Shown: piece after piece, positions 57,801 through 58,892 of the stretch | Layout: each line of letters starts with the position of its first letter | How positions within the stretch are numbered: position 1 is the stretch's first letter | Assembly (NCBI GenBank): GCA_035084275.1 | Contig: CM068756.1 | Coordinates: forward strand, 9,238,001-9,302,000 | Source of the DNA: Hydrolagus colliei | Lineage: Eukaryota | Length of the DNA stretch: 64,000 nucleotides | Direction of reading: 5' to 3' | The notes under the pieces: model-generated | What the model was told of the DNA's origin: nothing | The model's database searches: none | The model's input: only the letters and a program-made list of their open reading frames with translations | Made by a program: the position numbers and the translations under genes

Positions 57801-58237
57801 TCCTGAATTTGTCTTGTTACAGATCCTGTCTGTGTGGCCTTGGATGAAAATCTGAAAGGGAAAGACCTGTGCAGTTTTATTTTTCCTTAAAATTGGGGTG
57901 TTTACGTCAACCAAAACATATGTAATAATCTATTCCAGCTAGTAAAGGTTATCATTTTGTTCAATTCTTCTTTATGATTTCCATTTGTTAGAGACCAGAC
58001 ACCTTGAAAGGTGCACATTTCAGAGAGAGAGAGAGAGAACAGCTACAATTAAGAGAAGTGAAACCGTTTCCACCTCTTAGAAAATTTAGCAATTTCCGAC
58101 AGCAACATCCTTACGGATACCATACTGAAGGACTGCTCAGCCACTGGAATAACAATTTGACTGCAGTCGCTGGTGGCATTCAGCATATTCATGACAAACA
58201 TAGGCTCATTTCGCAGGTGTATTAAAGTATTACTTAC

Positions 58238-58240
58238 CCC
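58238..58240 (-). CDS. sowah: Candidate 3-nt microexon GGG (Gly) of Sowah
   Basis: Minus strand ...ctatcctgaaag|GGG|gtaagt; about 100-nt AG-free zone upstream with a distal T/C-rich tract; the AAG acceptor is weaker; supplies the Gly that restores the 33-aa ankyrin spacing. Confidence 0.62.
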
Positions 58241-58530
58241 CTTTCAGGATAGACATGTCACCGTTCCAACAGTGAATAGTGATGCATAAAATTGAGGGAG
58301 AAAATATGTAGAAAATAAGCATACATCAGAGACAGGGTCAAGAACCTAATTTCACAGTGACATACAGGTAATTTGGCTTTGAAAATCTTTGTCAATTCTA
58401 AACTCATTTGGAAAAGCATAGCTCAAAAGGCTGGTGTCTGAATATGAGATAGCTAGCCTGAATTCCAATATTTATAGCGCAGTTTGCAAATGCATTACCC
58501 CTGTCACAATGAAATAAGTGACATACTTAC

Positions 58531-58533
58531 ATG
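58531..58533 (-). CDS. sowah: Candidate 3-nt microexon CAT (His) of Sowah
   Basis: Minus strand ...ctttgcaccaactcgctcag|CAT|gtaagt; about 70-nt AG-free pyrimidine-rich zone upstream; TACTAAT branch-point-like motif (+ strand 58593-58599); supplies the His of the S-H-G-G-Y motif. Confidence 0.75.
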
Positions 58534-58892
58534 CTGAGCGAGTTGGTGCAAAGGTGTTGGAACCGGGGGAGGGGTAGATAAGAAGACAAGTAATTAGTAC
58601 ATTAATCTTTTTTATGATATCATTTTTCAGACCTATATGATCGTAATGTAAATTAGAAATAAAGGAGGGTTCATGGAAAATAGAATTAATTTCAAGTAGG
58701 TCAATCGCTCTACAATAACTGCATTTCAAGCAGTGTGTAATTTATGGCAACATTTGTCCATTTTCCTGCACGCTGCTGATTACAATGCTCTTGCTCACTT
58801 CTATCAGTTGAAAGTCAGCTTGCCAGATAACATTCTGCACCATAATGAAATTCATTTGCAGTACAAAAACTTGAGTGAATCAAACAAGCGCA

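Follow-up and report, generated by a model that had tools for sequence, protein, structure and literature searches.

How is an ankyrin repeat completed when the two exons that encode it, joined directly, leave it two residues short? This question is raised by the minus strand of a 64,000-nucleotide (nt) stretch of DNA from the cartilaginous fish Hydrolagus colliei (assembly GCA_035084275.1, contig CM068756.1), hereafter called the window, which carries an intron-rich ankyrin-repeat gene. It is putatively the "parental", Irx-linked Sowah (sosondowah) gene, a name given as a label by a first-pass annotation of the window. The Irx-Sowah block is said to have been the subject of a study by Maeso et al. 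in 2012. In the intron between two exons of this gene, denoted A and B, single codons CAT (His) and GGG (Gly) are each enclosed by an AG acceptor and a GTAAGT donor, and the first-pass annotation proposed that they are two consecutive exons encoding one amino acid each. The evidence presented below makes it probable that both are genuine single-codon exons. The features concerned are listed in the order in which they lie on the minus strand, with a slash marking an exon boundary.

61639-61725, minus strand: exon A, 87 nt, phase 0 to 0, encoding TALHWAAKHGKEKMAEMIAKTGIDVNVKS, protein end ...DVNVKS, donor tct/gtaagt
58534-61638, minus strand: proposed intron 1, 3105 nt, from exon A to the CAT exon, including a run of 196 N
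58536-58608, minus strand: putative upstream control region of the CAT exon, AG-free over 73 nt, with a branch-point-like ctaAt, a pyrimidine tract and TGC
58531-58533, minus strand: candidate microexon 1, CAT (His), acceptor cAG at 58535-58534, donor GTAAGT at 58530-58525
58241-58530, minus strand: proposed intron 2, 290 nt, separating the two candidate one-codon exons
58238-58240, minus strand: candidate microexon 2, GGG (Gly), acceptor aAG at 58242-58241, donor GTAAGT at 58237-58232
54885-58237, minus strand: proposed intron 3, 3353 nt, from the GGG exon to exon B
54812-54884, minus strand: exon B, 73 nt, phase 0 to 1, encoding GYTALHIAALHGHRHIILLLINTY and 1 further nt, protein start GYTALH...

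Length of the Repeat Encoded by Exons A and B

Exons A and B lie 6754 nt apart, and exon B is bounded by an acceptor tcctag/, with an AG-free zone of 64 nt, and a donor aca/gtaagt. A direct join of the two exons is in frame and gives a TALH-to-TALH spacing of 31 residues by hand count. Both exons were scanned separately against the Pfam profile Ank (PF00023), which has 33 positions and a curated cut-off of 21.1 bits. Residues 1-28 of exon A matched profile positions 4-31 of 33 (E-value 5.2e-06, 26.9 bits), and residues 1-21 of exon B matched positions 2-22 of 33 (E-value 3.2e-05, 24.4 bits). The last residue of exon A is placed at position 32 by extension and exon B begins at position 2, so that positions 33 and 1 are left without a codon. 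The usual length of such repeats was evaluated from 783 consecutive TxLH-to-TxLH spacings in 150 ankyrin proteins, which were the best matches to a search with exon A. The spacing was 33 residues in 480 of the 783 cases and 34 residues in 150, while 23 were shorter than 33 residues and 3 were exactly 31 residues long. The first-pass annotation had held that direct joining yields 31 residues, two short of the canonical 33, and this was hence borne out by the letters, the Ank profile and the spacing survey alike.

Lengthening the existing exons was ruled out as a source of the two codons: no GT is found at +6 of exon A, and the 6 nt upstream of exon B contain an in-frame TAG. Longer exons starting from the acceptors of the two candidates were rejected as well, as the frame from the CAT acceptor meets a stop after 9 codons and an exon from the GGG acceptor to the donor gtaagg, 124 nt further on, shifts the frame. 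This 124-nt exon could be a frame-shifting, non-productive alternative. Starting slightly upstream of the GGG acceptor, 64 codons can be read without a stop (58117-58240, minus strand), and a 10-nt candidate, cag/TATGGTATCC/gtaagg, is located at 58126.

Frequency of Single-Codon Sites

The two candidates, cag/CAT/gtaagt followed by aag/GGG/gtaagt, sit in the needed order and 290 nt apart. Their coordinates, order, GTAAGT donors and separation were all recovered from the minus-strand letters as the first-pass annotation had described them. The pattern AG-NNN-GTAAGT occurs four times on the two strands of the whole window, two of which are the CAT and GGG sites, and these are also the sole sites of the relaxed form AG-NNN-GTRAG in the 6754-nt intron. 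The combined form AG-CAYGGN-GT, in which one exon would supply both codons, was absent from the readable part of this intron.

The chance of such an arrangement was evaluated with a second-order Markov model of the gene's strand, from which 60 Mb of sequence were simulated. This model predicts 0.081 AG-NNN-GTAAGT sites per intron of this size, with a probability of 0.0031 for two or more. Only 0.9% of the simulated sites were preceded by an AG-free zone of at least 73 nt, which is the length measured at the CAT site, and the probability of two sites in one intron with both zones at least that long was approximately 3e-7. When the first site had to encode His and the second Gly, the simulation gave approximately 6e-6, a figure that depends on an assumed family motif considered below; the codon-blind values of 0.0031 and 3e-7 are independent of that motif.

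A third AG-NNN-GTAAGT site on the gene's strand, gag/CAA/gtaagt at 32227-32236, is located in the 28-kb intron that follows exon B. It has an AG-free zone of 37 nt and a pyrimidine fraction of 0.50. This site is probably a product of chance, because the repeat spacing from exon B to the next exon (exon C, described in the last section) needs no extra residue, and it was hence taken in as a control.

Splice Signals at the CAT and GGG Sites

Upstream of its acceptor, the CAT site has a zone of 73 nt without AG; the corresponding zone of the GGG site, read partly by eye, measures 105 nt. These values agree with the "about 70 and 100" nt noted in the first-pass annotation. Over the 3947 AGs of the minus strand, the AG-free zone has a median of 11 nt and a 99th percentile of 77 nt, which places the CAT site at the 98.6th percentile. 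At the control sites, which are the 14 remaining AG-NNN-GTRAG matches in the window, the zones span 2-37 nt. At the CAT site, a branch-point-like ctaAt was read by eye approximately 60 nt upstream of the acceptor, with a pyrimidine tract at approximately -57 to -27; downstream of this tract come a less pyrimidine-rich spacer, a TGC at -17 and the acceptor cag. The pyrimidine fraction of 0.71 in the range of -45 to -4 corresponds to the 98.3rd percentile. The donor consensus is CAG/GTAAGT, and the CAT donor matches it at 8 of 9 positions.

The order of these elements at the CAT site, namely a distal branch point, a distal tract and a UGC between the tract and the acceptor, is that of SRRM3/4-type neural microexons, and the TGC at -17 fits such control as judged from its position. 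Together with the G of its acceptor and the first donor letter, the CAT exon forms a GCATG (58529-58534, minus strand), the core of the Rbfox motif. Three letters separate AG from GT at both sites, so they fall outside the definition of a recursive splice site. They carry the sequence features of a microexon: an AG acceptor, a GT donor, a length that keeps the frame and splice signals beyond chance expectation, the last being the filter that dedicated microexon callers apply.

Weighing of Alternative Readings

Several observations weigh against the reading of CAT and GGG as exons. The expectation of His-Gly itself relies on the assumption, taken from the first-pass annotation, that Sowah proteins would read SHGG at the hairpin. 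A 31-residue spacing exists, though it is rare. The acceptor of the GGG site is weak, being an aAG with purines immediately upstream, and the pyrimidine fraction is only 0.48 across the 27 upstream nt examined. The run of 196 N at 58893-59088 lies within the A-B intron, 358 nt upstream of the CAT exon, and as it is unread it could hide another source of the missing codons. Among sequencing runs matching the exon A region (61580-61785), one contained it in full and was of unknown kind and eight contained it partially, and three single-cell RNA runs were listed; no listed run with exon A words was recorded as RNA. Finally, an intron of this size should contain by chance 0.79 bare matches to AG-CAY-GT and 1.17 to AG-GGN-GT, and each was observed once; the chance formula quoted in the MicroExonator paper likewise leads one to expect such bare matches. 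The argument is therefore carried by the extended donors and by the architecture upstream of the acceptors.

One rival explanation is that the two sites are unused look-alikes and that exon A is spliced straight to exon B, leaving a repeat of 31 residues. The direct join is in frame, spacings below 33 residues occur at the frequencies given above, and 13 of the 18 GTAAGT on the minus strand are at no recognisable exon. Nevertheless, this explanation has to account for two ordered, full-consensus sites with extreme AG-free zones, for which the joint chance is 3e-7 to 6e-6, and none of the 14 control sites resembles them. It needs a coincidence of the order of 1e-6, and we consider it unlikely.

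Slightly less likely again is that the sites are real but that one is used alone, or that both are used rarely or in a limited set of tissues, so that the main product has 31 or 32 residues in the repeat. Every combination of inclusion is in frame, and the weak aAG of the GGG site and the TGC near the CAT acceptor fit regulated more than constitutive splicing. In addition, known 3-nt microexons are alternative, as exemplified by those of the cytohesins, whose percent spliced in (PSI) was 66-76% in two cell lines. In view of the spacing survey, a main product with a shortened repeat would however be unusual. This possibility is a variant of the two-exon reading and not its opposite.

It is highly improbable that the two codons are encoded elsewhere in the intron, since the 6-nt exon aag/ATTCCT/gtgagt at 57048 and the pair of 2-nt and 4-nt exons at 58802 and 57125, although all have GTRAG donors in the proper order, are preceded by ordinary AG-free zones of 13, 18 and 10 nt (median 11) and would supply Ile-Pro or Asn-Leu, in our judgement poor residues for a hairpin tip, while the unread N run is a further conceivable source and a single AG-CAYGGN-GT exon is absent from the readable intron.

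Sequence statistics and splice-site architecture thus lend good support to the interpretation of CAT and GGG as a pair of single-codon exons. Regarding the proposal of the first-pass annotation, the two-residue deficit and the outlying character of the sites, both statistical and architectural and such as real microexons should show, were upheld, and the inclusion of both codons in the mRNA is what we infer from them.

A Possible Route of Splicing

Inclusion of both exons would give ...KS-H-G-GYTALH and restore the canonical 33-residue ankyrin repeat, in which the tip of the β-hairpin, or loop, would be longer by two residues and of normal length. A 3-nt exon should be too short for U1 at the donor and U2AF/U2 at the acceptor to bind side by side as usual. 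Two features of the sites could compensate for this. One is the full-consensus GTAAGT donor at each of them; the other is a shift of the branch point and pyrimidine tract by 60-100 nt upstream, which would be visible as the AG-free zones. The unit from branch point to donor would then have the length of a small normal exon. U1 on the donor would cover the entire exon, and the acceptor side would be recognised via the far-upstream branch point and tract.

The three introns might be removed stepwise, every step fusing one codon onto the neighbouring exon. Such an ordered path would resemble recursive splicing, with 3 nt kept per step, and an order from 5' to 3' or the reverse would be compatible with the sequence. 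Since all four combinations of inclusion are in frame, the exons may be constitutive or alternative. A more tentative extension, which we hold to be possible yet doubtful, is that inclusion of each exon is independent of the other and regulated by tissue, giving four forms of the hairpin (none, His, Gly and His-Gly) at the tip of the ankyrin binding loop by an obligatorily ordered, recursive-like splicing across the 290-nt intron. The loop would in that case be tuned combinatorially, one residue at a time.

Relation to Known Microexons

Single 3-nt microexons are already known in animals. The 3-nt microexon of cytohesin-1 and -2 adds one Gly to the PH domain, generating diglycine and triglycine variants (PMC6314551). 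The candidates described here are similar in being single-codon exons inside a folded domain. The cytohesin exon is conserved and alternatively included, and its Gly alters a binding loop; in contrast to that one exon, those of H. colliei would form a tandem of His and Gly in an ankyrin hairpin. A 3-nt microexon is also established for Drosophila TnT, and a 3-bp exon is described for Drosophila homothorax. In RPS24, microexons of 3, 18 and 22 bp are located between exons 4 and 6 (PMC12207440, PMC11162997). The presence of a 3-bp exon beside other microexons provides a vertebrate precedent for consecutive microexons; it differs from the present pair in having a single 3-bp member and in affecting the C-terminal, 3' coding end instead of a structural repeat.

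The CAT site can further be compared with neural microexons, in which the pyrimidine tract is shifted so that 15-30 nt separate it from the splice site, the predicted branch points are farther away (medians of 45-47 versus 34 nt) and UGC motifs for SRRM4 are found; the authors proposed that this lengthening gives the splicing machinery physical space (bioRxiv 10.64898/2026.01.16.699960). A strong donor, a shifted tract, a distant branch point and a UGC before the AG are shared between the CAT site and SRRM3/4-dependent neural microexons. This likeness is one of sequence, and the branch points implied here would lie farther out, at approximately 60 to 100 nt, than the medians of 45-47 nt given for neural microexons.

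Among plants, exons of 1 nt (APC11/VPS55) and an adjacent pair of 5-nt and 12-nt exons in rice have been described, and intronless copies keep the spliced-in letters (PMC8831610). The candidates resemble these ultra-short microexons in their size at the lower limit, their GTRAGT donors, which are conserved in plants, and the ease with which annotation routinely misses them. The plant exons belong to another kingdom and splicing context, and none of those described is a pair of 3-nt exons. A different type of likeness exists with recursive splice sites (AG/GTAAGT), where a strong acceptor is followed by a strong donor within an intron that is removed stepwise; recursive sites leave nothing behind, whereas three letters would be kept here at each step.

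The literature search gave no report pairing sowah with a microexon. No pair of consecutive 3-nt exons was found in the sources searched, whose supplementary lists (MicroExonator, plant and Drosophila) may hold tandem cases.

Implications

A length of 3 nt is the practical lower limit known for animal spliceosomes. If the reading is true, two consecutive exons of this size, 290 nt apart, constitute a natural test of how splice sites are paired without an exon body. It would also expose a blind spot of dedicated microexon callers, which are described as seeking the inserted letters as a single intronic match flanked by AG and GT. As CATGGG has no single match of this kind in the intron, such callers would presumably drop a tandem pair or list it as a 6-nt insertion of unexplained origin. 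A gene model that omits the two codons is left with a structural repeat from which two residues are deleted. Should intronless Sowah copies of other vertebrates carry both residues, they would act as fossil cDNA and attest to an ancient origin of the pair.

Other Parts of the Gene and Database Searches

The exon that follows exon B is located 28 kb downstream, and its protein sequence starts with AKPNIRDYDGKMPLHYW....

26837-26932, minus strand: exon C, the next exon, 96 nt, encoding AKPNIRDYDGKMPLHYWKGSEDLFKPASLQS, donor cat/gtaagt

Of the 18 GTAAGT on the minus strand of the window, five are the donors of the three ordinary exons and the two candidate microexons (starting at 61638, 58530, 58237, 54811 and 26836). 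Exon C alone gave no match in Pfam. Its homologue search returned no candidate, the length window of that search shutting out full-length relatives, so that the result is uninformative on their existence. Further downstream, long open frames are present on both strands at 20500-21120 of the window. On the minus strand, an 86-codon stop-free stretch extends over 20905-20648 and ends with a stop at about 20647-20645; as judged from this open frame, it may be the last coding exon. A search with the stretch gave one candidate and none that scored, under a length window that again shuts out full-length relatives.

With exon A as query, the top 150 matches of the protein search, ordered by summed score, were all giant ankyrin proteins with many repeats and included no Sowah-like protein; the protein-cluster search with the same exon gave generic Ank clusters only. 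The eight sequencing runs that partially match the region 61580-61785 are labelled as two other organisms, and they contain 2-3 of the 15 words sampled from it. These shared words point to near-identity of exon A, in whole or in part, among relatives.
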